Origin: Neoechinorhynchus agilis
Lineage: Eukaryota > Animalia > Acanthocephala
NCBI GenBank assembly: GCA_051530055.1
Contig: CM121343.1
Coordinates: 3,690,389-3,754,388, forward strand
Reading direction: 5' to 3'
Length of the DNA stretch: 64,000 nt
Shown piece after piece: positions 8,165 to 62,245 of this stretch. Below the pieces are notes generated by a model that searched no databases, had not been told where the DNA came from, and was given only the letters and a program-made list of their open reading frames with translations. Within the stretch, counting starts at the first letter, position 1. The number at the start of each line of letters is the position of its first letter. The translations under genes were made by a program, and so were the position numbers.

Positions 8165-10641
8165 TTTTAGCCAATGTTTTTAAAAAAGGAATGTTCAATT
8201 CAAAAAAAAGGAATGATGGATCCATCCTCGAAGCTACGGAAAATAAAGATGTTCCTCCGTTCCCATCGGAACTATTATAAAAAATTGAGTATTAAAAAAA
8301 GAATCTAGGACCATTTGTAGATGCGTTGAGATTGGAACTTTAAATGAAGATAGAAATTTGAATCCTTCGATCTTTGGCTCTACATTCTCCGATCTCTCAC
8401 CAGCATCTCATAATTTTTAACCAATGTTTTTGAAAATGGTTGCGGTATTCAGAAACGAGATACATCCTAGAGGCAATAAAGGATAAAGATGTTCCTCCGT
8501 TCCCATCGGAACTATTATAAAAATTGAGTATTTAAAGAAGAATTTAGGACCATTTGTAGATGCGTTGAGATTGGAACTTTAAATGAAGATAGAAATTCGA
8601 ATGCTTCGATCTTTGGCGCTACATTTTCGGATCTCTCGCCAGCATCTCATAATTTTTAACCAATGTTTTTGAAAATGGTTGTGGTATTTAGAAACGACAT
8701 ACATCCTAGAGGCAATGGAGGATAAAGATGTTCCTCCGTTCCCATCGGAACTATTATAAAAAATTGAGTATTAAAAAAAGAATTTAGGACCACTTGTAGA
8801 TGCGTTGAGATTGGAACTTTAAATAAAGATAGAAATTCGAATGCTTCGATCTTTAACTCTACATTTTCGGATCTCTCGCCAGCATCTCATAATTTTTAAC
8901 CAATGTTTTTGAAAATGGTTGTGGTATTCAGAAACGAGATACATCCTAGAGGCAATGGAGGATAGAGATGTTCCTCCGTTCCCATCGGAACTATTATAAA
9001 AAATTGAGTATTAAAAAAAGAATTTAGGACCACTTGTAGATGCGTTGAGATTGGAACTTTAAATAAAGATAGAAATTCGAATGCTTCGATCTTTAACTCT
9101 ACATTTTCGGATCTCTCGCCAGCATCTCATAATTTTTAACCAATGTTTTTGAAAATGGTTGTGGTATTCAGAAACGAGATACATCCTAGAGGCAATGGAG
9201 GATAAAGATGTTCCTCCGTTCCCATCGGAACTATTATAAAAAATTGAGTATTTAAAGAAGAATTTAGGACCATTTGTAGATGCGTTGAGATTGAAACTTT
9301 AAATAAAGATAGAAATTCGAATGCTTCGATCTTTGGCTCTAAATTTCGGATCTCTCGCCAGCATCTCATAATTTTTAACCAATGTTTTTGAAAATGGTTG
9401 TGGTATTCAGAAACGAGATACATCCTAGAGGCAATGGAGGATAAAGATGTTCCTCCGTTCCCATCGGAGCTATTATAAAAAATTGAGTATTTAAAGAAGA
9501 ATTAAGGACCATTTGTAGATGCGTTGAGATTGAAACTTTAAATGAAGATAGAAATTCGAATGCTTCGATCTTTGGCTCTACATTTTCGGATCTCTCGCCA
9601 GCATCTCATAATTTTTAACCAATGTTTTTGAAAATGGTTGTGGTATTCAGAAACGAGATACATCCTAGAGGCAATGGAGGATAAAGATGTTCCTCCGTTC
9701 CCATCGGAACTATTATAAAAAATTGAGTATTTAAAGAAGAATTTAGGACCATTTGTAGATGCGTTGAGATTGAAACTTTAAATGAAGATAGAAATTCGAA
9801 TGCTTCGATCTTTGGCTCTACATTCTCGGATCTCTCGCCAGCATCTCATAATTTTTAACCAATGTTTTTGAAAATGGTTGTGGTATTCAGAAACGAGATA
9901 CATCCTAGAGGCAATGGAGGATAAAGATGTTCCTCCGTTCCCATCGGAACTATTATAAAAAATTGAGTATTTAAAGAAGAATTAAGGACCATTTGTAGAT
10001 GCGTTGAGATTGAAACTTTAAATGAAGATAGAAATTCGAATGCTTCGATCTTTGGCTCTACATTTTCGGATCTCTCGCCAGCATTTCATAATTTTTAACC
10101 AATGTCTTTGAAAATGGTTGTGGTATTCAGAAACGAGATACATCCTAGAGGCAATGGAGGATAAAGATGTTCCTCCGTTCCCATCGGGGCTATTATAAAA
10201 AATTGAGTATTTAAAGAAGAATTAAGGACCATTTGTAGATGCGATGAGATTGAAACTTTAAATGAAGATAGAAATTCGAATGCTCCTATCTTTGGCTCTA
10301 CATTTTCGGATCTCTCGCCAGCATCTCACAATTTTTAAGAAATGTCTTTAAAAATGGTTGTGGTATTCACAAACGAGATACATCCTAGAGGCAATGGAGG
10401 ATAAAGATGTTCCTCCGTTCCCATCGGGGCTATTATAAAAAATTGAGTATTTAAAGAAGAATTAAGGACCATTTGTAGATGCGCTGAGATTGAAACTTTA
10501 AATGAAGATAGAAATTCGAATGCTCCTATCTTTGGCTCTACATTTTCGGATCTCTCGCCAGCATCTCACAATTTTTAAGAAATGTCTTTAAAAATGGTTG
10601 TGGTATTCAGAAACGAGATACATCCTAGAGGCAATGGAGGG
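8165..10641. repeat. Tandem array, ~240-bp unit, ~10 copies
   Basis: GATGTTCCTCCGTTCCCATCGGAACTATTATAAAA recurs about every 240 nt. The first unit is the most diverged, and neighbouring units share private variants. Confidence 0.97.
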
Positions 10642-10819
10642 ACTACTGAAGATGCGGATCCAGTAAAAGTCTGGATGGATTGTATACTCTTCTAAGATAA
10701 ACAACAACAAGCGTGCGACAAAACCAGTATTTCTTAAAGTTCTTCCGTGTCAATGGTTACGCTGGGCTTATCGCAGGATGGAAGCAGAGCTCGTGAATAT
10801 ATCCCGAACTTCCCCGGAA

Positions 10820-11584
10820 ATGGATATGCAGCCGATAAAATGCGTCATTGTCGGCGACGGGTAATGTTGTTTTGGCCGTGTATTGATGTACTCATTGGAT
10901 TATTCGAAGGGCTGTGGGAAAGACTTGTCTTTTAATATCTTACACAACCAAGACGTTTCCAGTGGAATACATCCCAACAGTTTTCGATAACTACTCCGGT
11001 AAGGTTATAGTTGAAGGAATATCCGTGAATCTCGGTCTATGGGATACCGCTGGTCAAGAAGACTATGATCGTCTTCGACCTCTTTCATATCCGCAAACAG
11101 TTAGCATTTCCTCATTTAGCTCTTTTTTGGCATCCTTTTTTTAGGATGTTTTTCTTATATGTTTTTCTCTCGTGAGCAGAGCTTCCTACTTGAACGTAAA
11201 GTCAAAGGTTCGTGCGGCGCTCCGATGGCAACGGACATTTTCGGTGTTTTTAGTGGAGACCTGAAATTAGTCATCATTGTCCAAACACGCCCGTGATTCT
11301 GGTTGGTACTAAATTGGATCTACGGCATGACCGGAGAATGAATACGGTACGGAGTTTATGAACAACAACAATTCTTGAACTCATGTGCCTTTCAGGACAG
11401 AAACTCCAATGAAATTTCTTATAACGAAGGCACACAGCTAGCAAAGGAGATCCAAGCCATCAAGTACGTAGAATGCTCATCTCTCAGGCAAGAAGGTGTG
11501 AAGGTAGTCTTTGACGAAGCAATAAGAGCTGTTCTTTTTCCTGCACAAAAAAACAACTGTAAACGAAAATGTAACATTTTGTGA
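10820..11584 (+). CDS. RAC1: Rac-family small GTPase, 5 exons
   Basis: Exons 10820-10860, 10910-11099, 11145-11207, 11254-11346, 11396-11584, joined by GT-AG introns of 45-49 nt. Motifs [52 protein letters not shown] and CAAX box CNIL. Exact Rac paralogue uncertain. Confidence 0.9.
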
Positions 11585-11904
11585 AAATCCGACAAAATCC
11601 AAGTCTATTTATGTCCGTCCGATGTTTACTCACTGCATTCTCATCCGCAAACACGTCATCGAAGGAACAACACGCCAACACGGTTCCTGACAACAACAAC
11701 ACTTATTTAATCGTTTTATTTTATCATAAACATTTCGGTTCACCCATTTTGTCTATTTCGCAATAATGAAAATTTCATCCGTTTATCCACAGAAAATCCT
11801 TCGGAATTATAGAATTGATGATGTGGTCATCGTAATCCAGGACGCAGCAAATAAGGGCGGGTGGCGATCCCGCGTTTTCAATATAAAACAACTAACATTT
11901 TTTT

Positions 11905-13485
11905 AGATGAGTGATGACGCGAGCTATCTTCGTGAAATATTTCAAAAAAATATTTTCTATCCGGGATTATGATGACCACATCTCCATCATCCCGAAGGAT
12001 AATCTCCCTCAATGATGAGGTGAGCTATCTTTATGAAATATTTTAATAAAATATTTTCTATCCGGGATTATGATGACCAAATCTCCATCATCCCGAAAGA
12101 TTATCTCCCTCGATGATGAGGTGAGCTATCCTTGTGAAATATTTTAAAATATTTTCTATCCGGGGTTATGATGACCAAATCTCCATCATCCCGAAAGATT
12201 ATCTCCCTCGATGATGAGGTGAGCTATCTTTATGAAATATTTTAATGAAATATTTTCTATTCGGGATTATGATGACCAAATCTCCATCATCCCGAAAGAT
12301 TATCTCCCTCGATGATGAGGTGAGCTATCCTTGTGAAATATTTTAATAAAATATTTTCTATCCGGGATTATGATGACCACATCTCCATCATCCCGAAGGA
12401 TTATCTCCCTCGATGATGAGGTGAGCTATCCTTGTGAAATATTTTAATGAAATATTTTCTATCCGGGATTATGATGACCAAATCTCCATCATCCCGAAAG
12501 ATTATCTCCCTCGATGATGAGGTGAGCTATCTTTATGAAATATTTTAATGAAATATTTTCTATTCGGGATTATGATGACCAAATCTCCATCATCCCGAAA
12601 GATTATCTCCCTCGATGATGAGGTGAGCTATCCTTGTGAAATATTTTAAAATATTTTCTATCCGGGATTATGATGACCACATCTCCATCATCCCGAAGGA
12701 TTATCTCCCTCAATGATGACGTGAGCTATCCTTGTGAAATATTTTAAAATATTTTCTATCCGGGATTATGATGACCACATCTCCATCATCCCGAAGGATT
12801 ATCTCCCTCGATGATGATGTGAGCTATCTTTGTGAAATATTTTAATAAAATATTTTCTATCCGGGATTATGATGACCACATCTCCATCATCCCGAAAGAT
12901 TATCTCCCTCCATGATGATGTGAGCTATCCTTGTGAAATATTTTAATAAAATATTTTCTATCCGGGATTATGATGACCACATCTCCATCATCCCGAAAGA
13001 TTATCTCCCTCAATGATGAAGTGAGCTATCTTTATGAAATATTTTAAAATATTTTCTATCCGGGATTATGATGACCACATCTCCATCATCCCGAAGGATT
13101 ATCCCCCTCGGTGATGATGTGAGCTATCTTTGTGAAATATTTTAATAAAATATTTTCTATCCTGGATTATGATCACCACGTCTCCATCATCCCGAAGGAT
13201 TATCTCCCTCGATGATGATGTGAGCTATCTTTATGAAATATTTTAAAATATTTTCTATCCTGGATTATGATCACCACATCACCATCATCCCGAAGGATAA
13301 TCTCCCTCAATGATGAGGTGAGCTATCTTTATGAAATATTTTAAAATATTTTCTATCCGGGATTATGATGACCACATCTCCATCATCCCGAAGGATTATC
13401 TCCCTCGATGACGATGATGCGAGGTTTCCCCGTGAAATATTTTAATAAAATTTGCTTTATCCGGGATTATGATCACCAAAAGTTG
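11905..13485 (+). repeat. Tandem array, ~98-101-bp unit, ~16 copies (left arm of inverted pair)
   Basis: Unit GAGCTATCTTTATGAAATATTTTAATAAAATATTTTCTATCCGGGATTATGATGACCACATCTCCATCATCCCGAAGGATTATCTCCCTCGATGATGAGGT. Confidence 0.97.
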
Positions 13486-14288
13486 AATTTTAATATCACT
13501 GATCGGGACACTGTTGGAATCTAGAATAAAATAATTTTTTACGTGTACACAAAAACGATTGTTTCCATTCCACCGGTAGTTTTTAGTTTAAACCGGCATG
13601 CGAACCTTTTTGGGCAAATCATAGTGATTATTCCTTTGAGTTCGGGATTGCTTTTGATCTATCAATTTAATTATACTCGAAGAACCAATCACGACCGAAT
13701 TCGCAGCTTCTCAAGGTAGTGCCTTTAATACTGATGACATTCCGTCGCTGGACAGTCATTTTTATCCTATGAAGAAAGTCCTACTCCTGTGAGTTATGAA
13801 AAATGACTCTAGAAAAGGTTTACTGATCAACGAATCCTTGGAGAAATTAAGCTCAACAATCGCAAAGATGTAAAATCGATTACTGAATTCGTATCGGGTA
13901 GAATTGGAAAAAATAACTTCAGAAAAGTTCAACTTTGAGTTGGTTTCAAAGAATTAATTGGAAAGGAGCAATTTAGCTATTACCGGAAAGGAAAAATGTC
14001 TTCGGGAAGACAAGACAGTTTGTATTCTTTAAACCCCGATTTCTATTTGGGAAAGTGCGTCTTGAAAGTTTTACTATGCAAATAGGTCAAGATTAAAAGA
14101 TGTTCAATTATGAAACCAACAAAATCTTCATACTAAAATACGCCGCAAATCTATACCTATGATTGGTATAATCTCTCATGATTTCTAATCGAACAACGTC
14201 TTATAATCGTTTTCAATTTAAGCAACTAATTTCAGATTTGCTTTGTGTAATAGTTTGAATTATTAAACGTTTGCACCTTCATTAAATC

Positions 14289-14886
14289 ATGGGATCATCA
14301 ACGGAATCCGCTTATGAACAAACGGCTAAAACCGTCAAAGGATCTAAATTAAGTAGTCAATCAAAAACAAGTTTACCATTGGCAACTGTAATGCATCTAT
14401 CATGCCTAGCACTAGTAATTGTATCCATTATTATTGAAAATCAATCATATTACGAATTCCCAATTGGATTATTCCCCGAAGTATGTATTTAAGTGATTTT
14501 CATTGTACCTTTCCTTATTTTTATCGGTATAATTATTTCACAGCGGCGAAAAATTCAAAAGAACTACAACGAACACTTTCCAGTTTCTTACCGAAATTGG
14601 ATTTCCAACACAATCCTAGTGGCCTCAATCGTCTTTATTTTCAGTAAAGGTATGATTCTCAAATTGTTTTAATTTTAAGCTCATACTTGCAGGAATTCTA
14701 CGAATAACAACAAATTCGATCATTTTGGTCATCCTATTTTTGGATGTAATTAATCCCGAAGATTTAATTGCCTTTAATACGTTGATTATGTGGAGAATGG
14801 TGCAAATCTTTCGCTTATATATAGAAATTATCAAAGATCTCAATGCTCGAAGCCACTATTTCGAGGTAGCGCTAAGTAAAATGTAA
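14289..14886 (+). CDS. Spliced four-TM membrane protein resembling a degenerate Hv1/VSOP voltage-sensor domain
   Basis: Exons 14289-14480, 14544-14649, 14693-14886 with canonical GTATGT..CAG (63 nt) and GTATGA..CAG (43 nt) introns give 163 aa. Segments: ISNTILV...K (S2-like), LFLDVI (S3-like), AFNTLIMWRMVQIFRLYIEII (S4-like). Further candidate exons at 15585-15629 and 15799-15816. Confidence 0.55.
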
Positions 14887-16049
14887 TTTTTCAATTTTAA
14901 ATTACACAACGCGAAAATGACGGGAACTCATTTGTGTACAAAAGCAAAATGATCTCGATTCGCGATCGATCAAATAGTCAGCATACTAACCGAAGACGAG
15001 GTTTATGACGTCTCATCCTTCCAGAGATTAAATCAATGCTCAGATTCGTTGCATAAATGAACTTTAGCATCGAGTTTCTAACAATTTCATTGCCGTTTTA
15101 TTTGTGGATTCGAGTAAGCTCACAGTTTAAACGTTCTATTCTCCGATTTTGCAAGAATGCACGAAATGGTTCGTTATGTAGAACTTGGACGAGAAAAACT
15201 AGTTTTACGCTTCTCAAAGCCAAAAACAATTTTAATTGCACTCTTGTTAAAGATTGCACACAGAATCTCTAAAATCGTAAAAGTAATAAAAGGGATCTTT
15301 TCACCAGATTAATTGCTTTATTCATTAAATTTAATTATACTCACAGCATCAATCACAACTCCCCTCAATGAACAGTTTTGTTTATCCTCTGAAAGTCTTA
15401 CTCCTGTGGTCGTTTCCCTCATTCCGCGGCTCAATTTGTCGTGCTGAACCACGGAAAATGTTCACTGTGAAACAATTAAGATGGATTAAAAGATCTCACA
15501 AATGCATAAAATTGAATTGATATGCTTATTGCAAATTTGAATTGGAAGCTTTTATTGACATCTGAGATTTCAATTGATTTTCAGTCCAATGAATTGCAAA
15601 TACGGAAAGGACACGAACGGATATTCGAGGTAAACTTGAAACGAGCCAGCTTTTAAAGCCGAAAAAACTATGAATTGTGCTTACGAATAAAGGAGAAAAG
15701 CTTTTGAGCTCCTTAGATATTTCTAAATCTTTGGCTGATGAACCTAGTTAACGTTGCTAAAGACGTTTGGAGTTTTTCCTCAAATCTCTATATTGTAGAA
15801 GAAGATTCAACGATAATTGTTTTTAATTCCCGTGGTGCATTCTTTTAAACGAATTTTGAGGCTTTTCTTACAGCCACAAAAATCATACAGTTCAAGTGCG
15901 TAATTCATTTTGATTTTGACCATTTATACGTTATTCCAAAAAAAGGATAATTCGCCAAAGTAACGCTTCCTCGGTGAAAAGAGAGGTGCTGCTTCCTCGG
16001 CGGACTCCGATTTCGTGCCATTCGAGGGCGCTAGAGGAATCCGCCGGGG

Positions 16050-17822
16050 ATGTCGTTATCGCAATCGCGGAAGCTCGCATCATCATCGAGGGAGATAATC
16101 CTTTGGGATGATGGAGATGTGGTCATCATAATCCCGGATAGAAAATATTTTAAAATATTTCACAAGGATAGCTCACATCATCATTGAGGGAGATAATCCT
16201 TTGGGATGATAGAGATGTGGTCATCATAATCCCGGATAGAAAATATTTTATTAAAATATTTCACAAAGATAGCTCACATCATCATCGAGGGAGATAATCC
16301 TTCGGGATGAAGGAGATGTGGTGATCATAATCCCGGATAGAAAATATTTTAAAATATTTCATAAAGATAGCTCACATCATCATTGAGTGAGATTATCCTT
16401 CGGGATGAAGGAGATGTGGTGATCATAATCCCGGATAGAAAATATTTTAAAATATTTCATAAAGATAGCTCACATCATCATTGAGGGAGATTATCCTTCG
16501 GGATGACGGAGATGTGGTGATCATAATCCCGGATAGAAAATATTTTAAAATATTTCACAAGGATAGCTCACCTCATCATCGAGGGAGATAATCTTTCGGG
16601 ATGATGGAGATTTGGTCATCATAATCCCGGATAGAAAATATTTCATTAAAATATTTCACAAGGATAGCTCACATCATCATTGAGGGAGATAATCCTTCGG
16701 GGTGATGGTGATGTGGTGATCATAATCCCGGATAGAAAATATTTCACAAGGATAGCTCACCTCATCATTGAGGGAGATTATCCTTCGGGATGATGGTGAT
16801 GTGGTGATCATAATCCAGGATAGAAAATATTTTAAAATATTTCATAAAGATAGCTCACATCATCATTGAGGGAGATAATCCTTCGGGATGATGGAGATGT
16901 GGTCATCATAATCCCGGATAGAAAATATTTATTAAAATATTTCACAAGGATAGCTCACATCATCATCGAGGGAGATAATCCTTCGGGATGATGGAGATGT
17001 GGTGATCATAATCCCGGATAGAAAATATTTTATTAAAATATTTCACAAAGATAGCTCACATCATCATCGAGGGAGATAATCCTTCGGGATGATGGAGATG
17101 TGGTCATCATAATCCCGGATAGAAAATATTTTAAAATATTTCATAAAGATAGCTCACATCATCATTGAGGGAGATAATCCTTCGGGATGATGGAGATGTG
17201 GTCATCATAATCCCGGATAGAAAATATTTTAAAATATTTCACAAGGATAGCTCACATCATCATCGAGGGAGATAATCCTTCGGGATGATGGAGATGTGGT
17301 CATCATAATCCCGGATAGAAAATATTTTATTAAAATATTTCACAAGGATAGCTCACATCATCATCGAGGGAGATAATCCTTCGGGATGATGGAGATGTGG
17401 TCATCATAATCCCGGATAGAAAATATTTTATTAAAATATTTCACAAGGATAGCTCGCATCATCATCGAGGGAGATAATCCTTCGGGATGATGGAGATGTG
17501 GTCATCATAATCCCGGATAGAAAATATTTTATTAAAATATTTCACAAGGATAGCTCACATCATCATCGAGGGAGATAATCCTTCGGGATGATGGAGATGT
17601 GGTCATCATAATCCCGGATAGAAAATATTTTATTAAAATATTTCACAAGGATAGCTCACCTCATCATCGAGGGAGATAATCCTTCGGGATGATGGAGATG
17701 TGGTCATCATAATCCCGGATAGAAAATATTTTATTAAAATATTTCACAAGGATAGCTCACATCATCATCGAGGGAGATAATCCTTCGGGATGATGGAGAT
17801 GTGGTCATCATAATCCCGGACG
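16050..17822 (-). repeat. Tandem array of the same ~100-bp unit in reverse orientation, ~17 copies (right arm)
   Basis: Unit GGAGATGTGGTCATCATAATCCCGGATAGAAAATATTTTATTAAAATATTTCACAAGGATAGCTCAC... is the reverse complement of the 11905-13485 unit. Confidence 0.97.
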
Positions 17823-18177
17823 TAGAAGATCCCTGAGCCTAAGAAATGGCGTTTCCGCGTACGCAACAAACCCTGAAATCCCGAAGGATTTTCTCGAGAA
17901 TGTAGTATTTATCTTCTAAAAGTCAGGATTCTTTAAGCGGGAAGAAACTCGAACTCCATGAAAACATTTCCATTCCGTGGAATTTGTATTGATTTTGTTC
18001 TAGGCAGTGGCGATTTTTTTGATGTTCTCTATGTTTGTGGGGAATTTTACACTCTATTTGATAAAAGTAGAATTTATCGTTTTTGGGACAGTAATTAATA
18101 ATCCTTTCATTTTATTTTGACCTCTTTTTTTTACAAAAACATGCAATTTTGTTACTTGAGTTATTGATTTTAGATTG

Positions 18178-20583
18178 ATGTCGTTCAGCTTTACAATCCT
18201 AAAACATAAAATTGGCTTTAGAAATTTTGTAGCTTTATCAACATCGATTAAAGTAACTGAAGAACAAGTGAAAACTATAGTTCAACATTTGCCGTCCCAA
18301 TATAATCCCAAAAAAGGTATGGATATAAGTTTAGTAGAAGGCATTTTATCTGAGACATTTAATCGGGATTTATTGACATTTGAGGAATTCCCATCTAAAT
18401 CGAACACGGACGAGGTCCTCGGTTATATCGAGGAAATATCGAGCTATTGCCGAGATATTATGAGAAGAACCAACTCAAAAGTACTTTCAATCGCGCAGTC
18501 TGAAAATACGAAAATAAATTCAATAATTGAATTTAATGCTTCAAACCCCAAAGAAATGAACCCTTTCTTTAATCCATCGAGTATTTCTCAGGCAGTTCAA
18601 CTCGGTTTGTTTGGTCTATGCGCTCCTTTGAACTTCGGTGGAAGTCAAAGACCTCCGTTTGGCATCACTGCTATCTTGGAAACTCTCGGATTCTATGATG
18701 TATCTTTTGCGTCCTTTATTGCTATGCACAATCTTTGGATAGTTCGTCCAATCGTTTTATATGGAACTCGGGACCAAAAGGCCCACCTACTGCCCAGTTT
18801 GGTCAAAGGCGATCTTACTGGTACACTTTTATCAATCAATCGGTATCAGAATCTATGCTTCGGTTTCCATTATTTGGCTTTTGACCGACTACCAATACGA
18901 ACCCAACGAAATGATGAAAACTGTGTACTGGAGGCGAAATTTAGATATCATCCGAGTTGAATATCGGTCTTTATTTACAGTTCTAGCTTTCATATTTAAG
19001 CTTGTTACTGACATTAAAACGATGGATTTCAATTTAGCATCAACAAAGCAAATAGCCATAATAGTTTGATTTTTTGTTACTCTTTTTAGCACCATAAGCA
19101 TTTTCTATAACGATTTGTTTTTGCAAATTCTACGGTAAGAATGAAAAAGCGAAGCAATAGACGATTTCACCGTTCGTGGACGAAATGTGACACTCAGAAA
19201 AGTGGAAGAAGACAAATCGAAACTTGGTCACGGTCTCAAGCAATGGAATAAGTCGACATGGCTTGGTGACGCCTTTTATAAAGTCCCCAATGTGCCCTGT
19301 GAAATAACTATTTCGGTTCAATCTAAGCACGCAGTCTGGTCCAGATTCTCCAATGAAGTTCTGTATGAGCACGATTACGTGGGTCTTGAACCACTTGGTT
19401 TTGGGGTTCTTACATCAGTGGTGGTTCTCCCTTGGCAACCAGGATATTCGTAAATCCACTAAAGGAGAATCTTCGAAGAAAATGAAGCTTTGATCAACAG
19501 CGTTGACTATTACGGTAGGCTTCGATGTAACGCTGACCAGTTTTCGAATGATATAATCGATTCGGAAAGTTATCAATTTCTTGCGATAGCTGGAGGAGTT
19601 TTAAAACGAGCACTCGAAATTTCTCTTGCGAACGCATGCAAGAATGAACGCTTCGGACAACCAGTGCATTCATTGGAAGCAATACAAATTGTGCTGGGTG
19701 AGGTTCATACTTGTGCCTATGTTATTGAGAGTTTAGTATATTTCATAAGTAGCATGGGTCATGGATCAAACGGGAGAATCGATAGATCCATCGAATCAAG
19801 TCTTGCTATACTCTTTGGTCCAAGATTTGTAATAGATGCATTAGAGTCTCTAATGGATATTTGTCCGTTGAATGCAGCTTTAAAGATCCGGCACGATATC
19901 GATGGTATCAAGACTATGGCATACGCACTTGGACAGTGTGCTGATATGGCATATGTAAAGAATTATATTTTATATCATTAATTCTTCATTTTCCATCTAG
20001 AATTAATGTACTAACAAATACTCATAAAATTCTACTCTCTAGTACTTCAAGAAGAGATATTCTCAAAATGAAGGGTAACCGAAGAAGCCAAACAATTCAG
20101 TCCTTTTTAAGGAAAATGAAATCTTCTTTGATTGAACGACTGGCGTGTTGCCAGGATGGTCGTGCATCTAATGAATGGATTAAAAATAGTCATCAGCTTC
20201 CTTACAAGTTATACGAAGTTGTTCATCCATCTCTCGAACAATCAGCAATGATGCTCGAGTTTGCATCTTACAATCTGGATGTGGCTTCCAAGTTCATGGT
20301 AGTATCAGCTTGTCCAGCAAACTGGTTCCTTCTATGCGCTTTTGATGTGATTTGCATGGCAGCGTGCATTTCGAGAGCAAGCAGATCTTATTGTATTGGA
20401 CTTCGAAACGCAGACGATGAACGAATCATGACTAACGCTTTTTGTCACAGAAAAGTTAATGATATTAAAGAATTAATTGAAACTTGCTGCTATGGCGATC
20501 ATCAAAAAGCTGTTCTAATTCCTAAGAAACCATTCGATATATTTGGCGTACAAGTACCACAACATCCGTTCGACAATAGCTAG
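18178..20583 (+). CDS. ACAD9: Divergent ACAD9/VLCAD-family protein, multi-exon
   Basis: GLFGL...GG, GT.DQKAHLLPSLVKG, LFTVLA, GGVLKRALE..A...ERFG, AYVIESLVY and ASRSYCIGLRNADDE match acyl-CoA dehydrogenase 9/VLCAD segments in order across four ORF pieces. Some junctions (18950-19190) are unresolved. Confidence 0.75.
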
Positions 20584-23046: not shown

Positions 23047-23340
23047 TGAACATAATCCTGCGGTTAAAGATTTCTTTTATTATAATGAAATATTTCGAAA
23101 GAGGAAATCTCATCCGGGAAATTGCTTTTAAGTTTTCTCAACTGTGAATGAACCCAAAAGATCTTCTTGATATGATTTAATCATAATATTGAATTGCGGT
23201 GTTGGTGGTGATGAACATAATCCCCCGGTTAAAGATTTCTTTTATTATAATGAAATATTTCGAAAGAGGAAACCTCATCCGGGAAATTGCTTTTAAGTTT
23301 TCTCAACTGTGAATAAACCCAAAGGATCTTCTTGATATGA
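23047..23340. repeat. Direct tandem duplication, ~165-bp period, 2 copies
   Basis: AACATAATCC..CGGTTAAAGATTTCTTTTATTATAATGAAATATTTCGAAAGAGG..GATCTTCTTGATATGA occurs at ~23050 and ~23215. Confidence 0.9.
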
Positions 23341-23498
23341 CTCAATTATAACGTTCGTTGAGAAAGTTGGTTTAAAACGCCGCCTTCGAATTGAAAGACA
23401 GTACTCGCGCCGCAAACGTTGGCTCAAACCTTAAAGCGCGTTTCTCGCCGTTCCATATCTTTGATGAATTCGCGATTTCTTTCCGTATTATTGCAGAT

Positions 23499-26814: not shown

Positions 26815-27368
26815 AATGATTGACGATATTTAATCGGCAGATTTTAATTTGCGTAAATTGTCGTTGTGATTTGAAAGACTTTGTAATCTACTTTAAAGAA
26901 TCAACTGGTGGGCTTGGGAACCTTTAGGGATAGATATTAATAAAAATAAAATCCATAATCGAATGATTGACGATATTTAATCGGCAGATTTTAATTTGCG
27001 TAAATTGTCGTTGTGATTTGAAAGACTTTGTAATCTACTTTAAAGAATCAACTGGTGGGCTTGGGAACCTTTAGGGATAGATATTAATAAAAATAAAATC
27101 CATAATCGAATGATTGACGATATTTAATCGGCAGATTTTAATTTGCGTAAATTGTCGTTGTGATTTGAAAGACTTTGTAATCTACTTTAAAGAATCAACT
27201 GGTGGGCTTGGGAACCTTTAGGGGTAGATATTAATAAAAATAAAATCCATAATCGAATGATTGACGATATTTAATCGGCAGATTTTAATTTGCGTAAATT
27301 GTCGTTGTGATTTGAAAGACTTTGTAATCTACTTTAAAGAATCAACTGGTGGGCTTGGGAACCTTTAG
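26815..27368. repeat. Tandem array, 147-bp unit, ~3.7 near-identical copies
   Basis: TGACGATATTTAATCGGCAG starts at 26821, 26968, 27115 and 27262. Confidence 0.97.
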
Positions 27369-27851
27369 GATCGGCCTTTTTATAGAGAAGCAATTCTAAA
27401 TTTTATTGTTGGAAATATTAATCAATGTTGAATCATTCTCAGGTACGATCTCGTCTTCGCGTTTATCAAGGCTTTCTGCGACTAAATCAGTGAAAATTCA
27501 CTCAAATCTTTTAAAAATGCGCAACTTTGTTTTTGATTACTTGCTTTTTCTAAGCATTTTTAACGATATTTTTCGGAATTCAATGTATTTATGTTTTGAC
27601 TGCAAAGAAAATATTTTGTTTGGTGTTGAGGAAATAAAGATTAATTCCCTTTGTGACAATATTTCGTCCGTCTCGTTGGACTTCTTTAGGTCTTTATTTT
27701 CGCGGCGGTGGTGGTTAAATTGAGCGACCCCGGCGCGTTCCAACTTGATTTGCATCGAACATAATTTTCAAATTGTGTGATGTAGATAATTTCTTAATTG
27801 TGTTTGGGAGCAACAATTCATTTCGGTAAACCGCGGCTGATTTACTACTAG

Positions 27852-30820: not shown

Positions 30821-30859
30821 ATATGTTAAAAAATGAACGAAGCAATAGCGTTGCTTGTT

Positions 30860-31400
30860 TGCTGGGTCACAGAGTTCGTATCCGTTACTATTGATGACAC
30901 ACACCCAAAGGAGACGGAAGGGAAGAGGCCGCCTCCTCGGGAAGGATCCATACAAAACTCATAACCGCGTCGAATGGTTCAGCAGGATACTAAGTGTGAT
31001 TTTATGCGTTTCCCTGACCAGTGAATCGATGGGAGGAACATTATCAGCCTTGAGAAAGGCCACAAATAAAACACTGAACAAAAGTTACCTGCTTGCCAAA
31101 ATTCAAAAATAGGAAAAAAATTCAATTGGCCCAATCAAAAGTGGCAAAGTTTGTACACGTGGTCAAGTGGATTAAAGCTCCTGATCGCAGTTTGTTGGGC
31201 CAAAGGGTTCGTATCCAAAGGAGACGGAAGGGAAGAGGCCGCCTCCTCGGGAAGGATCCATACAAAACTCATAACCGCGTCGAATGGTTCAGCGGGATAC
31301 TAAGTGTGATTTTAATCGTTTCCCTGACCAGTGAATCGATGGGAGGAACATTATCAGCCTTGAGAAAGGCCACAAATAAAACACTGAGTAAAAGTTACTG
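30860..31400. repeat. Dispersed ~330-bp repeat family, copy 1 (partial tandem dimer)
   Basis: GGAAGGGAAGAGGCCGCCTCCTCGGGAAG..CATACAAAACTCATAACCGCGTCGAATGGTTCAG..GAAAGGCCACAAATAAAACACTGA occurs twice here and twice at 61160-61775. Confidence 0.92.
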
Positions 31401-32973
31401 GCAAAGGAGCGTACAACGGTTCTGTAGCAGATCAACTCGCTTATTCATATTTTAGTTGGAGATCAAAAGAGGGTGATTTATATTTGGATGGTTCCATGTT
31501 AAACTGTATAAAGGGTATGAATGAAAAAAGTTTGAACTTTCCGAAACTGGCGATGTTAGGTTCCAGATAGGGCATAAAAGTAGATTACGGTTCGACTTTT
31601 GTATTCAGTTAATTTTTTTTAGAATACGTATCTAAACGGGTGGCAGGTATATTGATTAGATCATTTGATTAAGACGAATGAAAGTGAAGAATTCTTTTTG
31701 GATGTCATGTTTGCGTAAGATATGCAACGACGATTCGTTCGATTAGTGCTTCTAAGCGTGCTTGGTCTTCTCGTTGGTGGCATTAGGCGCTGCTGCTGCT
31801 TGTGGTGTACGTGTTTACCAATCAGTTATTATCGAGACGTGCGTGGAACGCGACGAAACGGGCGGGGAACAAGGTTGTTAGCATCCGAGGGAGAAGAGCA
31901 GCATTGATTTAAATTTTAAGCCATCAACTGGTGTTCCATTATTGTAGCTGACGCTACCGATATAGACTCTGTGGATTATATCAACGCAATGCTGCTGCTG
32001 CTACATATCGAGACTCAGTTTTTTCCGCCGCTGCTGCTGCTGCTGGCATGCGACATTGTGGTACGTATAGCGCCGATTCTCTTCTCTTGCAATAGATCGT
32101 CGCTTCATGCAAAAGAGATGTATTAGTCGAAGAGAGCGATTTTTAAAGCTCTCAAACCTTGTCGTTCAATCCACTACTTTGAACACCTAAAATACTCGGC
32201 CCCGCATAAAAAGAATACTCAGTTTGTGTTGTACTAGGAACATTCGTGTCTCATTGATTCAACAAAGATGACGGGTTCAACGCTTATTTTGTCCGTTATG
32301 GGCTTTCGAACCGTTGATCCGTATCTGGAAGTCGGTGGTAGTACGTGACCGTTCCCCCCCCGTCGATCGCATGCTAGTCAGCATTTCTCAAAGATAGCGA
32401 CATTGTGTCGTCATGTAAGACTTGGGCTTATTTTGCCCGTCAGCAGTTAGCCGCCTCCTCCTCATCATCTAGCAAAAGTGTACATAGCAACTTCGATACC
32501 ACCCCAACCACGACTGACCGTTTGTTAGGCTGTCTCATATCACTGGGAGAACTTCTTGACTCCACAGACTCGAAAATGGTCTCCTCCCTTAAATTTTTGC
32601 CGTGGTCACTTCGGTGTCTCTGAACGTCCTTTGCTCTTGTGGTTTTTAAAACTGAATTTTTCCAGTTTAACTTCGAATCGAGAACGTTTAACGAGGGGTT
32701 TGAGGTCTTTTTAATACTCTTAGAGTCTCAGAATAACCCACGATGCTCGCTTGGCGTCGGATCGATAATTTGTTATCGCATTCGTCTATATAATGTCAAT
32801 GCCAAATCGTCTGTATTTTTGCGATTCCTCGTCTCCATCGTTCATTTATCGCCCTCTAGCTCATATTTGTTTCTTATCTTTGATTTAGATACACACGCCA
32901 ATGGTCAAGATCATCTAATATTCTCACTGAAAGGTTTTCTGTATACAAACGGCAAAAAAATCAATTATCCCTT

Positions 32974-44043: not shown

Positions 44044-45045
44044 ATTGTCGATGATTCGCGATCCTTTTGGTCCGATTAAAGTCTTGATCGCGACCGAGAA
44101 AGCCGTACTACTGAATGGATAAACTAAATTGTAGCAAAATGTCTTTAAAAAAACTTTGAGAAAATTGTCGATGATTCGCGATCCTTTTGGTCCGATTAAA
44201 GTCTTGATCGCGACCGAGAAAGCCGTACTACTGAATGGATAAACTAAATTGTAGGAAAATGTCTTTAAAAAAACTTTGAGAAAATTGTCGATGATTCGCG
44301 ATCCTTTTGGTCCGATTAAAGTCTTGATCGCGACCGAGAAAGCCGTACTACTGAATGGATAAACTAAATTGTAGCAAAATGTCTTTAAAAAAACTTTGAG
44401 AAAATTGTCGATGATTCGCGATCCTTTTGGTCCGATTAAAGTCTTGATCGCGACCGAGAAAGCCGTACTACTGAATGGATAAACTAAATTGTAGCAAAAT
44501 GTCTTTAAAAAAAACTTTGAGAAAATTGTCGATGATTCGCGATCCTTTTGGTCCGATTAAAGTCTTGATCGCGACCCCAGAAAGCCGTACTACTGAATGG
44601 ATAAACTAAATTGTAGCAAAATGTCTTTAAAAAAACTTTGAGAAAATTGTCGATGATTCGCGATCCTTTTGGTCCGATTAAAGTCTTGATCGCGACCGAG
44701 AAAGCCGTACTACTGAATGGATAAACTAAATTGTAGCAAAATGTCTTTAAAAAAACTTTGAGAAAATTGTCGATGATTCGCGATCCTTTTGGTCCGATTA
44801 AAGTCTTGATCGCGACCGAGAAAGCCGTACTACTGAATGGATAAACTAAATTGTAGGAAAATGTCTTTAAAAAAACTTTGAGAAAATTGTCGATGATTCG
44901 CGATCCTTTTGGTCCGATTAAAGTCTTGATCGCGACCGAGAAAGCCGTACTACTGAATGGATAAACTAAATTGTAGCAAAATGTCTTTAAAAAAAACTTT
45001 GAGAAAATTGTCGATGATTCGTGATCCTTTTGGTCCGATTAAAAT
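44044..45045. repeat. Tandem array, ~120-bp unit, ~8 near-identical copies
   Basis: ATTGTCGATGATTCGCGATCCTTTTGGTCCGATTAAAGTCTTGATCGCGACCGAGAAAGCC.. recurs every 120-121 nt; variation is mainly in A-tract length. Confidence 0.97.
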
Positions 45046-45851
45046 CTTAAAGATCTATATTAACGGCTAATAAAAAACTACTATTTAACCAGAAGCATCC
45101 GAATTATTGTGGCTACTTACTCTATAGTAGACCGTGATTTTTAAATACGAATTAGTTTCAGCTCAAATTTTGAAGAATCTCAAGGCGATTAGGTATAAAC
45201 ATGGGACAATTTAAGACACGATGATCGAGATGTCTAAAAAGTCATGACTTTCTAAATGCGATTGGCGGCTACGACGTTTTGATCCATTGCGCAACCCGGG
45301 CCGTAGCAGCAGCAGCGACTAACATCCATTAATCATTTTTAGCAATTGAAGGTAAAACATCCAATTACTTTTGTTCTTCGAGGTTGTGTAAAATGGCCTA
45401 AAGGACTCGTTAAACCATAGAAATCAATCACACATTTTTGATGGAAAGAAATTTCAGGATGTCGTTTAGTTTTGACAAGGACATTCTTGAATCGGGCATG
45501 CAATCGATTTATAACGACCAATGAGTTCGATTATAATGAAGAAAACAAATAAAAGAAAATAACGGTAATTCGGATATTGGTCGTTTTTATCACAAGACAA
45601 AATACGAGATAAAAATATCGGAGATATACATCTTCGTTTTTTTTGCGTCTCAATCAAACCAACCTTTGTTCTAAGTCTTTCATCATATTCGAGACTGAAA
45701 GATAATCCCATTTTTCAAAATTGGGTCCATGGAAGAAAAACTCATTCGCTGACGTTAAGAGGAAGTCGGAGTTCGAATTCAATTACTTAAGCGACAAAAG
45801 AATGGCATTTTTTTCGTTCTAATTTCTTATTTTAAAGATTCTAACTTTTTA

Positions 45852-46339: not shown

Positions 46340-46560
46340 GTTAAGAAAGGCCACACTTAAACACTGAGTAAAAGTTACCTGCTGGCTAGACTTCAAAAAT
46401 AGGAAAAAATTCAATTGGCCCAAATCCCAGTTTGTTGGGTCAAAAGGTTCGTATCCGTTACCGTTGATGACGACACACAACCAAAGGGGATGAAATACCT
46501 CGTTGGAGGAAGGAGGAACCTCACTGATGAGCCCCACCTCCTCGGGAAGGATTTGCTGCT
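46340..46560. repeat. Dispersed ~330-bp repeat family, diverged partial copy
   Basis: AAAGGCCACA..ACACTGAGTAAAAGTTACCTGCTGGCTAGACTTCAAAAATAGGAAAAAATTCAATTGGCC..GTTTGTTGGG.CAAA.GGTTCGTATCCG is shared with 31060-31215 and 61390-61550. Confidence 0.85.
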
Positions 46561-47619
46561 TGCCCAAGAAAAATTATCAAATGAAAAGTGGGATAAAATA
46601 AAATGCTTGTTGTCCAAAAATATTTTCAATATTAATCGGTAAACTTTGACCTGAAGTATAGAGCGCTTATTATTTAATCGTTTGAATTCATTTAGTTTTT
46701 GATCGTTGGCCTTTTTTATCGTGATTTAGCAAGTATCTTTGTTTTGCTTCTTTAAATTGGCGGACTTTTTTCGGCCCAGTTTAGAAGTTGTTTTGGTGGA
46801 TATATTTTGTTTGTTTCCTTTGATAGTTATCCCCATCGGGATTTAAATTCATAGATTTATTTCCCCCCTCCCCCGATATTTCAAGTCGGATAATTCCGAC
46901 AACATTCAAGTGAGATGAAATTTCGGAATTATCCGACTTGAAATGTCGGGGGAAATACTCTTAAGAAAGTATCTGTGACATAGATATTGATTCCCTTTGT
47001 AGCAATATTTCGTCCGTCTAACCGGACATCTTGAAGTCTAAAAATCCGATGAAACATACGAAAGGGAATCAATAAATTAATCTCTATTTTCATTAATTTC
47101 GTAGCGCTTAAACAACTCAAGCGATTGTTATTCTAAAAAGCACGATAAGCTTAATTATACTGTCTAATTTTTATACATTACAAGAAAAAGCGCATGCTCG
47201 AACAAAACTGAAATCAAAGTCCGCTAAAATGACCGAGTAACGGTCAAATCGACAATATGGATCCATAGATTAGAATTAAAAAAATTGTTTGCTGTCGAAG
47301 AAATCCACGAAAAGATCAAATGACATTCTTAAACATTCAAGTAAACGACGAAAATGGGTAACAAGGAAGCGTTCAAATCGATATTTATCAAAATTTACGT
47401 TAAAAGTCGTCGTATATTTTGTGATCCATTATTGCAACGTATCTTTGAGAAAGGTTTGGCTATTCCAGGAAACAAATGGAAGTTTTTATTGGCGATTATG
47501 GATGATTTTTTTGAAAAGAAATTAACATTGATGAGAGAAATATTCACTTTCACAATTTTTTTATTTAATGTATTGATTTTTAAAAACCTCTTCTGTGGTC
47601 GCAGCATCAATAACGTCCC

Positions 47620-47855
47620 AGCTCTGAGCCGGTCTCTTTCGCTGGACAGCTTTGCTTATCGTCTAAAGAAAGTCTTAATCCCGTTGTCGTCTCTAATCCA
47701 ATTTAAATATTTCTACATCATAAAATAAATTTAATTATACTGGCAGCATCAATAACGTCCCAGCTCTGAGCCGGTCTCTTTCGCTGGACAGTTTTGTTAG
47801 TCTTACTTCCGTTGTTGTCTCTAATCCAATTTAAATATTTCTACGTCATAAATTT
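47620..47855 (+). repeat. Two tandem ~135-bp units of a short dispersed repeat; a third unit resumes at 51096
   Basis: GCAGCATCAATAACGTCCCAGCTCTGAGCCGGTCTCT occurs at ~47621, ~47743 and (1 mismatch) ~51117. Confidence 0.9.
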
Positions 47856-48450
47856 TTTTTAATCAATATATATTTATTTTAGCGCTCGCTCACAAACTGT
47901 TATATGCCTAGCCGTCCTCGTCATCAATTGTCGCCCGAATGCTAGCAATGTTGCCTCTCAACACGGCGATGCCGATATTTTTGAACATCGCTGGTTGTAA
48001 CCTGAAGGCGTCGCTTCAGATCCTTCAGAAGTTGAAGAGCCCCGCTACCAAGAGATCCGTAGGTCTCAACCCCAAAAGCCACGAACTCATGGGCTAAATC
48101 GAGGTATTTCGCCGTTTTCCGCCTTTCCACAGTACTCGCTGAACCTCCAGCTTGAACCGCCGAGAACTTGAGATTGCTGGCCGCGAGTGTATCGACACAA
48201 GTGGCGTCCCAGAGGAGGCATTTACGCTCCCGCCAAGAAAATACGGTCACCCCATCAAGTCTACGTCCGTCGTCCCTACAGAGGTTGGCAGGTTCCAAAT
48301 TTTTGGGGGCATGTACCGCGTAACAAGTGCCCGGCTCAGCACCACGATAATTTCGGCATGTCTTGCGAATCTTCCTGCTGATTTTCTACAGATGAGACCA
48401 TGACGTCCCGACGAATCCACATTTGCACCACAGCGGCATGCAAACAATAT
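47856..48450 (-). mobile_element. 3' part (zinc knuckle, RLE, 3' UTR, short A-tail) of a CRE-type retrotransposon
   Basis: CRCGANVDSSGRHGLICRKSAGRFARH, EPANLCRDDGRRLDG, LLWDATCVDT, FVAFGVETYG and ATIDDEDG*, then AATAAA and an A-tract (plus-strand T-run to 47860). Confidence 0.88.
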
Positions 48451-51097
48451 ACACTAAATTCTGGAAAAGGTCAACTCACAAGCAACGCTGATTTCACCTT
48501 CAATAACGGTTTATTGTAGCTTAACAAATAATTTTCAAAAGAAGCCAGTAATATCTCTAAATAAGACCCGAACTTACAAGCAAAAATCTACAAGCAATCG
48601 ACATGTCAACGATTTCACCACCGTCCCCTCGCTTCACTCGGGGCTTAACTATCTCAGCAAACCACCATTCGCCGCACGTCGCACCGCCCAAGCCCGACGC
48701 TGCTGACGCAGGCCACCTCAACGTGCCACCTGTTAATCACGCGGATCACGAGAGGACCGGCGCTGCAAATTCACAAAATCAACTTTGGTCCGAACAACCT
48801 GTAGAGAGCAAGCGGCAAACGGAAATTTCAAGTACTCTGGGAGGTGAGGCCAATGCTGCCCGATATCCGAGGGTCTCAACACATAATTGCCCGGTTTGTG
48901 ACAAGCAGATCAAAATTACGAAATTGGGAGAATTTTGGAATCACTGCCCAAGGAATTCCCGATGTGTTGGTTCCGGCCTTCTGCTGGCAAGCTCTACTCC
49001 TCAGCTCAGTGAATCTCGCCAGAACATCCAAAACATCGTCCATTGCACCCCTCCGTTGCTGGAGATCGTGCGCGTTTTGCCCAGAAACATCCTGAAGCGG
49101 ATCCCAAATGGGCGCTCGATTTCAGGTAGCGAAGAGGTATTCAGCCCTGCTGAGCGACTGTCTCGAGACAAATACCGAGATATCTTGGACACGCCTTTTC
49201 GCATTCCCGAGACTGGTACTTTGTGCTATCTGACGAATCTCTTGTTACCCTCATCAAAAACCGGGTGTCTTCCTTCGACAACTCGTTTGGAGAGGTCCGA
49301 CGCAAAGCTCGCGTTTTTAGGGGAGATTTCTCAAAGCCACCGAATCCGGGCCGAGTTTGAACCCGTTCAGTGACCCAGAGAGTGCCTTCTAAATTCGCCG
49401 ATGGTGAGGCGCAGTTCGCATTCTATCGTCCACCGACGAATTCGCAAGAGATGATACGAAAACTATCCAACTTCTCAGAGAGAAACATCCTCGATCCGCT
49501 GGACATCTAGAATATTCGGAGATGATCCCCTCGTGCAACCTGATAGAATTTTCGGTTGATGTAGTTAGTAAAGCCGTTTCGTCGTTCGCAAATGGGTCAA
49601 CACATGGGCTCGACGGGCTTCCGCCTCAACACCTAAAGGACATGATGTCCTTCTCCGTAGGTGATCCGTCCTATGTTCTCCTGAACGCCTTGACTCGGCT
49701 AGTCGGCGTTTTCTCTGGAGACAACCTGTTTCCCAAAGCGATCGAATTGTTTTTTGGACTTCCCTCTGCGCTTTAGAAAAGAAGGACGGTGGGATTCGTC
49801 CCATCGCGATCGGCTCTACATTGAGACGACTAACAGTCCAGTTCAACTAGGCTGCTGCACACCTTGTGGGGCGGAAGCCATAGTCCACGCACTCCGTACA
49901 TTTGTAATTGAGAACGTCAAACCGCGTGTGATCCTGAAATTAGATTTCCGGAACGCCTTCAATTCCGTTAATCGCGACTCGCTCTTAAAAGCTATCAGAG
50001 ACCACGCACCGGAGGCTTACGGGTATTTTAGAAATTCGTACTGAGCTGCGACCCCTCCTGCATCCTTCCGAAAGAGGCGCTCAGCACGGAGACCCGTTAG
50101 GTCCCATTGGTTTCGCGCTCACAATAAACGAATTAGTGCACTTTCTTGATGCGAAATTCAATGCTTGGTACCTGGACGATGCTACGCTGGGAGGCGATCC
50201 CCAGGTAGTTCTTTGTGACCTGGAGAAAATCAAGATGGGGGCAAGCAAGTTGGGCATTGAATTGGACACAGAAAAATGCGAAATTCCATTCCGTAACATA
50301 GAAAGGAGCCCTACAAAAGACTTAATAAAGCGCGACTTTGAAAATGTTGCACCCGGGATAGAAATGGTCGATTTTGACCGGCTTAAGCTTTTGGGCAGTT
50401 GCGTCTTTGATGGGAATGTGGAACAAGAAATTAACAGCCTTCTAGAGAAATTATCGGTGCTTGGATCACACGAGGCTCTGTTCTTGATCAAGAATACCCT
50501 CTTCATCCCAAGTTCCTTTATGCTCTACGCACGGCGCCGTTTTTCAAGCACAAGGCTCAGCTTGGCAAGCGAGATGACAGATTGAAAGACTGTCTCGAGC
50601 AAGTTTTAAATGTCCAGCTGTCAGAAGAGGCATGGCGACAAGCATCCTTGCCTGTATCTTCTGGCGGGTTGGGTATCCGGAAAACAGCAGACATATCCAT
50701 GCCCGCATTTTTAGGCTCCTATGAGGGAAGCGGAGTTCAGCGCATTCTGAAATCTACTTATCGTATTGATAGGCATTTTGAAGGGGGAATCAGTGAGTGG
50801 TGTACACTGACCAACTCCGATCAAGTACTTGTGAATGACCAAAAACAATCTGTGTGGGCCTCTCGTCGCAAGAGTTCAAAGCTCTCTCTTATCAGACTCA
50901 AGCGACGACGTTGTCCGTGCCAGGTTGTTGGCAGTCTCCACTAGAGAATCAGGTGCTTGGTTGAACGCGGTCCCGCTAGCATCTGTGGGTATTCTCCTCT
51001 CCGACGAGGCAATAGGAGTCGGAGTTTCAATGAGACTTGGACTACCGATGTGTCATCCCCACCGTTGCTGCTGCTGCGATGCAAATGTGGATTCATC
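48451..51097 (+). mobile_element. 5' part (UTR, N-terminal Zn finger, reverse transcriptase) of a decayed CRE-type retrotransposon
   Basis: ATG 48603; CPVCDKQI..GEFWNHC..C.GS; GLDGLPPQHLKD; GGIRPIAIG; QLG..TPCGAEAIVH; KLDFRNAFNS; WYLDDATLGG; LPVSSGGLGIR; ends at HPHRCCCCDANVDSS. Many frameshifts and stops. Confidence 0.9.
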
Positions 51098-51370
51098 ATT
51101 AAATTTAATTATACTCGCAGCATCAATAACGTCCCAGCTCTGAGTCGGTCTCTATCCTCCTAGGAAAATCTTACTACTTCGGTTGCTGTCCTTAAGAATC
51201 GTTCACTATTCCCCTTTTGAGGCGGACGCATTTAAAACCCGCTGGTGATGAGTTCATCTCCGTGATGCAATAAAGACACGACAGAATTCTACCGTGAAAG
51301 TGGCATTCTTCGGCACTTTACGATTTTATTGCGTAAATGTTCATTTAAGAGAGTAAATTTTGATCACGAT

Positions 51371-61159: not shown

Positions 61160-61775
61160 GTGGATAAATGGATTAAAGCTCCTGATCGCAGTTGGTGGGC
61201 CAAAGGGTTCGTATCCGTGACTGTTGATGACGACACAACCAAAGGGAACGGAAGGGAAGAGGCCGCCTCCTCGGGAAAGACCCATACAAAACTCATAACC
61301 GCGTCGAATGGTTCAGCAGGGTATTAAGTGTGATTTCATGCGTTTCCCTGACCAGTGAATCGATGGGAGGAACATTATCAGCCTTGAGAAAGGCCACAAA
61401 TAAAACACTGAGTAAAAGTTACCTGCTGGCTAGACTTCAAAAATAGGAAAAAAAATCAATTGGCCAAAATCAAAAGTGGCAAAGTTTGTACACGTGGTCA
61501 AGTGGATTAAAGCTCCTGATCGCAGTTTGTTGGGCCAAAGGGTTCGTATCCGTGACTGCTGATGACACGCAACCAAAGGAGACGGAAGGGAAGAGGCCGC
61601 CTCCTCGGGAAAGACCCATACAAAACTCATAACCGCGTCGAATGGTTCAGCAGGATACTAAGTGTGATTTTAATCGTTTCCCTGACCAGTGAATCGATGG
61701 GAGGAACATTATCAGCCTTGAGAAAGGCCACAAATAAAACACTGAATAAAAGTTACCGGCTTTCGAGACTTCAAA
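61160..61775. repeat. Dispersed ~330-bp repeat family, tandem dimer
   Basis: GGATTAAAGCTCCTGATCGCAG occurs at ~61170 and ~61504 (period ~334); homologous to 30860-31400 and 46340-46560. Confidence 0.92.
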
Positions 61776-62245
61776 GTTTGGTGATATAGAGATTAATTTA
61801 TTGATTTCCTTTTACAATATTTGGTCCGTCGTCTCGGATTTCTTCGGTTGAAAAAAAGCTTAAAAGTAACCTGAAGAAGTCCTACGAGACGGACGAAATA
61901 TTGTGAAATGGAATCAATAAATCGATATCGATGTCAGACCAAACAAAATATATCCACGAAAGCAACTTCTTTACAATAACTCTGTCTCTTTGTGTAATGA
62001 CAGTTTTTATTCTTGCTCTATGAATCCCAATAATTGGTATAAGGCGAAATTGTCTATAAACATTTATCATTGATGAATGACCAATTAAATTAAAGTATTT
62101 ATAATTTCATTACTTTGTTTAAACTAACAATTTTAACCATTAGCAGAATTCGATTGGTGGTTGTGACGAAACCGACCACCTCGATTCTTCCGTGTGTCTA
62201 TCCGTTTTTATCTAGTTCTGTTGCGCTTCAGATATTCCCTCTGCG

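Follow-up and report, generated by a model that had tools for sequence, protein, structure and literature searches.

We describe here a 6.1-kb structure (11791-17894) in the genome of the acanthocephalan Neoechinorhynchus agilis, in which two facing arrays of a single satellite unit, lying in opposite orientations, enclose a segment of single-copy DNA that contains an unannotated gene. The structure is located on contig CM121343.1 of assembly GCA_051530055.1, between a Rac-type GTPase gene (10778-11584, plus strand) and ACAD9, which is annotated from 18178 on the same strand, in an interval for which GenBank holds no annotated feature at all. All coordinates refer to the window, the 64,000-nucleotide stretch of this contig that was analyzed. 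The two arms belong to one pool of sequence variants rather than being mirror copies of each other, and the hallmarks of a transposed element are lacking. Given these observations, we favor, at about even chances, a reading in which the structure is a locus-specific inverted repeat that arose by local rearrangement, was then expanded by unequal crossing-over and is capable of flipping the DNA between its arms.

The left array was placed by Tandem Repeats Finder on the plus strand at 11912-13480 (period 101, 15.7 copies, 92% matches) and the right array on the minus strand at 16072-17820 (17.7 copies, 94% matches), the unit of the latter being the reverse complement of the former. With a degenerate inner unit at 16046-16071, the right array as a whole extends over 16046-17825. 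The two arrays lie 2591 bp apart, and the spacer proper (13481-16045) is single-copy in the window. Searching with a 38-nt core from the unit, for which the chance expectation is 0, gave 15 matches on the plus strand and 18 on the minus strand, in every case within the two arrays. The longest inverted pair between the arrays is 806 nt at 96% identity, and the two match perfectly in inverted orientation over as much as 139 bp (12735-12873 with 17005-17143). These results bear out the facing arrays of about 16 and 17 units, separated by 2.6 kb, that a preliminary description of this DNA had reported. The unit itself occurs in variants of 101 and 98 bp. The 98-bp variant contains a perfect 18-nt AT palindrome followed by a CGGGAT...ATCCCG hairpin that is imperfect, so that of the two internal palindromes attributed earlier to the unit, the first holds in this variant and the second holds in approximate form. 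As DNA, single units fold better than shuffled sequences (z = -2.0 and -3.1).

The units of the two arms are intermingled in their sequence relationships. Units of opposite arms show a mean of 5.61 differences per unit, as compared with 5.71 among units of the left arm and 4.66 among those of the right, and 12 of 31 units find their nearest relative in the opposite arm. Rare combinations of variants are present in both: units L02, L04 and L07 of the left array resemble R13 of the right array with 0-2 differences, L09 equals R08, and L14 is separated from R11 by 3 differences. The variants common to both arms follow no consistent mirror order, and a unit-by-unit mirror correspondence of the arms was rejected, the best colinear runs not being clearly above permuted order (p 0.01-0.14). 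Inverted homology is confined to the satellite; unique sequence on the outer and inner sides of the arrays shows no inverted homology, and the colinear mirror homology, unique sequence included, that characterizes an inverted segmental duplication (palindrome) was not found. Each arm also possesses features of its own. The left array has a higher-order period of ~300 bp, corresponding to three units, and a locally expanded CCAAATC/GAAAG variant, and the five outermost units of the right array (R01-R05) are ~99% identical. The phases of the unit at which the arrays start and stop, like their copy numbers, differ between left and right.

Beyond each array, and separated from it by a piece that is not unit-like, lies a decayed fragment of the unit in the orientation opposite to that of the array. 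On the left this is a fossil partial unit on the minus strand (11791-11847), of which 11791-11843 is recovered by the unit profile at an nhmmer E value of 5e-6 and the first 18 nt constitute the left tip. On the right it is an 18-nt fragment on the plus strand (17877-17894); this outer piece, ~18-20 nt in all, is not significant alone (E=0.27), yet contains a 13-nt exact match to the unit. A degenerate unit in opposite orientation had previously been placed outside both arms, and it is borne out for the left side, the right side retaining only the short piece just described. The two tips, which read AGAAAATCCTTCGG(A/G)ATT on the plus strand at 11791-11808 and on the minus strand at 17877-17894, are inverted with respect to each other and match at 17/18 positions, confirming the 18-bp terminal inverted repeat of the preliminary description. 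Both tips carry AGAAAATCC and ..ATT, as against AGATAATCC and ..ATG in all 33 array units, and because the tip version is common to both tips and occurs in no array unit, the tips are nearer each other than to the arrays. Aligned in direct orientation, the left fossil unit and the last right-array unit are identical at 44/57 positions and have in common a 2-nt CG insertion (GGACGYAG, versus GGATAG in the arrays).

Under stricter alignment scoring there is no unit-like sequence beyond either tip. An extension of the left fossil unit past 11791, hinted at by a gappy alignment, was dropped after this scoring. The two sub-terminal pieces that separate the tips from the arrays, F1 on the left (11848-11911, 64 nt) and F2 on the right (17826-17876, ~50 nt), have no inverted similarity to each other (score 11; median of shuffles 12); their one resemblance is a weak direct match of 12/14, TGGCGATCCCGCGT, at the 95th-99th percentile of shuffles. 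A scan for target-site duplications of 4-15 bp, covering all boundaries and ±25 nt around the tips and the array ends, yielded nothing above chance, which agrees with what had been noticed before: direct repeats of 5 and 6 nt occur at the chance rate, none is 7 bp or longer, and a single offset 6-mer compares with 0.6 expected. Within the 64-kb window neither the tips nor the unit has a second copy.

An origin in place is favored because the features expected of transposition, namely an inverted flanking domain, a target-site duplication and another visible copy, are missing. It is favored as well by the limitation of homology to the satellite, the asymmetric array edges, the lack of a mirror register, the common pool of variants and the local amplification in each arm, and by the folding of the unit, the absence of a transposase and the commonness of private satellites in the window. 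According to this reading, a local rearrangement (by inverted duplication, by inversion or through template switching at the dyads of the unit) would have left the repeat in both orientations around resident DNA, and the decayed fragments at 11791-11847 and 17877-17894 would be remnants of the original ends. Unequal crossing-over may then have expanded and reshuffled each arm, which would account for the three-unit higher-order repeat of the left array and the near-identity of the five outer units of the right array, and exchange between the arms, or alternatively their recent split, would keep them within one sequence pool. As in a segment that recombination can invert, inverted repeats with long identical tracts stand on either side of the enclosed DNA. 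Irrespective of how they arose, arms of 1.6-1.8 kb that are ~95% identical, lie 2.6 kb apart and include perfect matches of up to 139 bp should be a good substrate for flipping the enclosed gene, and also for the formation of a hairpin or cruciform; inversion of the spacer by recombination between them is plausible. As to function, there is probably nothing programmed about the structure.

Several observations weigh against this account. Each tip is closer to the other than to any array unit, and both lie exactly where unit-like sequence ends; paired tips at the edge of homology have the look expected of the terminal inverted repeat of a transposon. Moreover, the unit is not strictly private to the locus, since a distant relative is present 5 kb away (23198-23280). 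Finally, the assembly was made with MaSuRCA, combining Illumina reads with Oxford Nanopore Technologies (ONT) R9.4 reads from ~50 pooled worms, and was scaffolded by Hi-C (PMC12690905); because it is a hybrid assembly from pooled animals, the variants of the array units need to be read with caution, and some of them may have been mis-polished.

The paired tips bear on the alternative that the structure is a non-autonomous foldback-type DNA transposon, with arms of tandem subrepeats, an 18-nt terminal inverted repeat and a host gene in its middle. Long inverted arms of tandem subrepeats are present, and arms of unequal copy number, as observed here, are usual in foldback elements. The two derived bases that the tips share against all of the array units, the arrest of unit homology precisely at the tips and the distant relative of the unit nearby are likewise in favor of such an element. 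The architecture also matches the scheme of Tetris, in which tandem-repeat arms surround a variable, transposase-free middle (PMC4079207). The Foldback-like element proposed in the preliminary description stands as far as its architecture is concerned (tandem-subrepeat arms around a variable middle, ending in short inverted tips), but it fails at every testable hallmark of transposition. Target-site duplication and a second copy in the window are lacking, as reported above; outside the tandem repeats, inverted similarity is limited to the tips (18 nt) and does not continue through the 50-64 nt that lead to each array, whereas the flanking domain of Tetris belongs to its inverted arms. A search of the spacer open reading frames (ORFs) with Pfam revealed no transposase domain, and apart from the enclosed gene all of them are ≤72 amino acids long; this absence would be expected of a non-autonomous copy too. 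The cargo, in addition, has introns and is oriented like both neighboring genes. We therefore regard a transposon of this type as unlikely, and it would be a little bolder still, and is improbable in our view, to claim a 6.1-kb mobile foldback-like element that carries an intact host membrane-protein gene, or a segment that is present in both orientations in the population.

The direct-orientation similarity between the left fossil unit and the last right-array unit, with its common CG insertion, suggests a different arrangement, in which two palindromic modules, each consisting of a minus unit, a loop and a plus unit, would lie in direct orientation around the gene with their inner arms amplified, the whole being a by-product of two insertions or of a local duplication. 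The weak direct match between F1 and F2, which would be the loops, points in the same direction; this loop similarity is, however, barely above chance, and the plus half of the distant relative of the unit is not significant. Since the arrays are ~95% alike, whereas the similarity of the fossil unit to the array units is only 77%, extra homogenization between the arms must also be assumed, and we consider this arrangement decidedly doubtful. An assembly artefact, in which the switch in orientation would stem from a mis-join at a repeat or from chimerism of a long read, would be in keeping with the hybrid assembly from pooled worms and with the difficulty of assembling tandem arrays. Fold-back chimeras, in contrast, are perfect palindromes without a unique center, and here a 2.6-kb non-palindromic, single-copy middle separates arms that are unlike in variant content and copy number, in a window with no run of N at any point along its 64 kb; an artefact is accordingly very unlikely. 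The least credible of these possibilities, to which we attach hardly any weight, is that the structure is a switch in use, flipping of which would regulate the gene by changing its orientation with respect to transcription that reads through from Rac. For this the locus offers a substrate, in the form of the 806-nt inverted pair and the 139-bp perfect match, but no recombinase. None of these alternatives displaces the local origin of an inverted satellite pair as the reading that we prefer.

The spacer has no long internal inverted repeat. It contains a three-exon ORF on the plus strand (14289-14865; exons 14289-14480, 14544-14649 and 14693-14865) with GT-AG introns, which GenBank does not annotate on CM121343.1 and whose product of 157 amino acids has four hydrophobic segments; further 3' exons may lie beyond 14865. 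This is the 'VSD gene' of the preliminary description. Pfam searches with its single exons returned nothing relevant, and its identity as a voltage sensor was not confirmed; a search of the PDB with exon 3 gave chance-level matches alone, and a homologue search with exon 1 gave no candidate. The ORF has introns and is encoded on the same strand as Rac and ACAD9, an arrangement that fits resident and captured DNA equally, and the gene capture envisaged earlier is without support.

Two copies of a dispersed ~130-nt element also lie in the spacer, both on the minus strand and ~1.66 kb apart: one at 13645-13810, which aligns with 47570-47860 and 51090-51215, and another at 15310-15430. The window holds five copies of this element on the minus strand, of which two in tandem and one further copy bracket a CRE-type retrotransposon (47.8-51.1 kb), the poly(A) end of which, at ~47850, abuts one of them. 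The best copies consist, on the minus strand, of ~22 nt (GGATTAGAGACAACAACGGAAG), then GTAAGAC, then a GC-rich stem. We take this layout to resemble that of a spliced-leader RNA gene; Rfam gave no match to the element. Spliced-leader RNA genes are a classic target of CRE-clade elements.

Within the window, the satellite unit has a single relative. Upstream of the GDI gene, a tandem repeat of 165 bp in 1.8 copies (23047-23351) is distantly related to it in minus orientation: one copy is identical to the unit at 55/79 positions, with a score of 33 against a shuffle maximum of 27, and the unit profile recovers 23198-23280 at E=0.003 with nhmmer; the plus half of this relative is not significant with the same profile. 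Because of this relationship, the 101-bp unit is best regarded as a satellite with older relatives nearby. When the 41-amino-acid stop-free translation of the unit was compared exhaustively with protein libraries by HMMER, two repeat proteins alone were matched, both of them unrelated: a surface protein of Rib type from bacteria and a Calx-beta-like protein from eukaryotes. An exact-pattern scan of metagenome contigs for the unit returned nothing. A hammerhead or other RNA origin of the unit was considered and discarded, Rfam having given nothing at E≤1 over 11000-18500; at E≤10, three units gave chance-level C/D-box-like matches alone.

Four other, unrelated local tandem arrays are present in the window. 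It follows that private satellites next to genes are ordinary here and that the inverted pairing is the unusual part of the structure. A 240-bp unit repeated 10 times at 97% identity (8243-10640) ends ~140 nt upstream of the annotated start of Rac; with this array upstream and the 101/98-bp array downstream, Rac lies between two different private satellites. Two further young arrays, also unrelated, have units of 147 bp (3.8 copies, 99%, 26815-27369) and 120 bp (8.4 copies, 98%, 44044-45048). A dispersed repeat family of ~250-330 nt is represented by adjacent pairs at 30857-31417 and 61191-61802, 30 kb apart and 80-92% identical, and by a 66-nt fragment at a third site (46359-46424).

On the right-hand side of the structure, ACAD9 is annotated as two adjacent models, 18178-19981 (393 amino acids, Acyl-CoA_dh_N) and 20116-20583 (155 amino acids, ACAD9-ACADV_C), which are probably one gene split by the annotation. 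In the numbering of the locus itself (L001), to which 8177 is added to obtain the window coordinate, these models correspond to 10001-11804 and 11939-12406. The first ACAD9 exon in the window is 100% identical to a GenBank protein of N. agilis. ACAD9 was found on one contig only, and a homologue search with it, intended to reveal synteny or an empty site in relatives, returned N. agilis' own protein alone and zero orthologues from relatives.

The locus represents a small, clean case of a gene flanked by one satellite in its two orientations, in an animal lineage that is rich in repeats and has been little studied. If both orientations of the spacer occur, it would offer a compact natural setting in which to study how satellite arrays drive inversion, and if the tips and arrays were to be found around other DNA elsewhere, it would represent a foldback-type element with a host gene in Syndermata. 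On present evidence it amounts to a structural curiosity, of a type already known, that bears on the annotation of this interval and on the interpretation of the unannotated gene enclosed in it.

Among known systems, Drosophila FB, which can bracket composite 'TE' transposons, and Galileo have subrepeat arms of unequal copy number with host DNA between them, as does the N. agilis locus. FB elements generate 9-bp target-site duplications and Galileo elements duplications of 7 bp, and for both, transposases are known and many copies are distributed through the genome; at the N. agilis locus neither a target-site duplication, nor a transposase in the spacer, nor a second copy within the window was found. 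In the foldback element Tetris of Drosophila virilis, the inverted arms include an outermost flanking domain of ≤866 bp; the element makes target-site duplications of 8-10 bp and is present in many genomic copies, and its tandem repeats also form satellite-like arrays (PMC4079207). The locus described here resembles Tetris in its long inverted arms with tandem repeats, in its variable, transposase-free middle and in a terminal part that includes a short stretch of the unit; it differs from Tetris in that 18 nt alone are inverted at its termini, there is no duplication and the window contains no second copy. A further likeness is to the inversion polymorphism of FLNA-EMD at human Xq28 and to the palindromes of the Y chromosome, which are inverted low-copy repeats whose arms homogenize each other and invert the intervening DNA; there too, highly similar inverted arms of kilobase size lie close together around unique genes and behave as one sequence pool. 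The arms of those structures are duplicates of unique sequence, whereas the arms of the N. agilis locus consist purely of tandem repeat.

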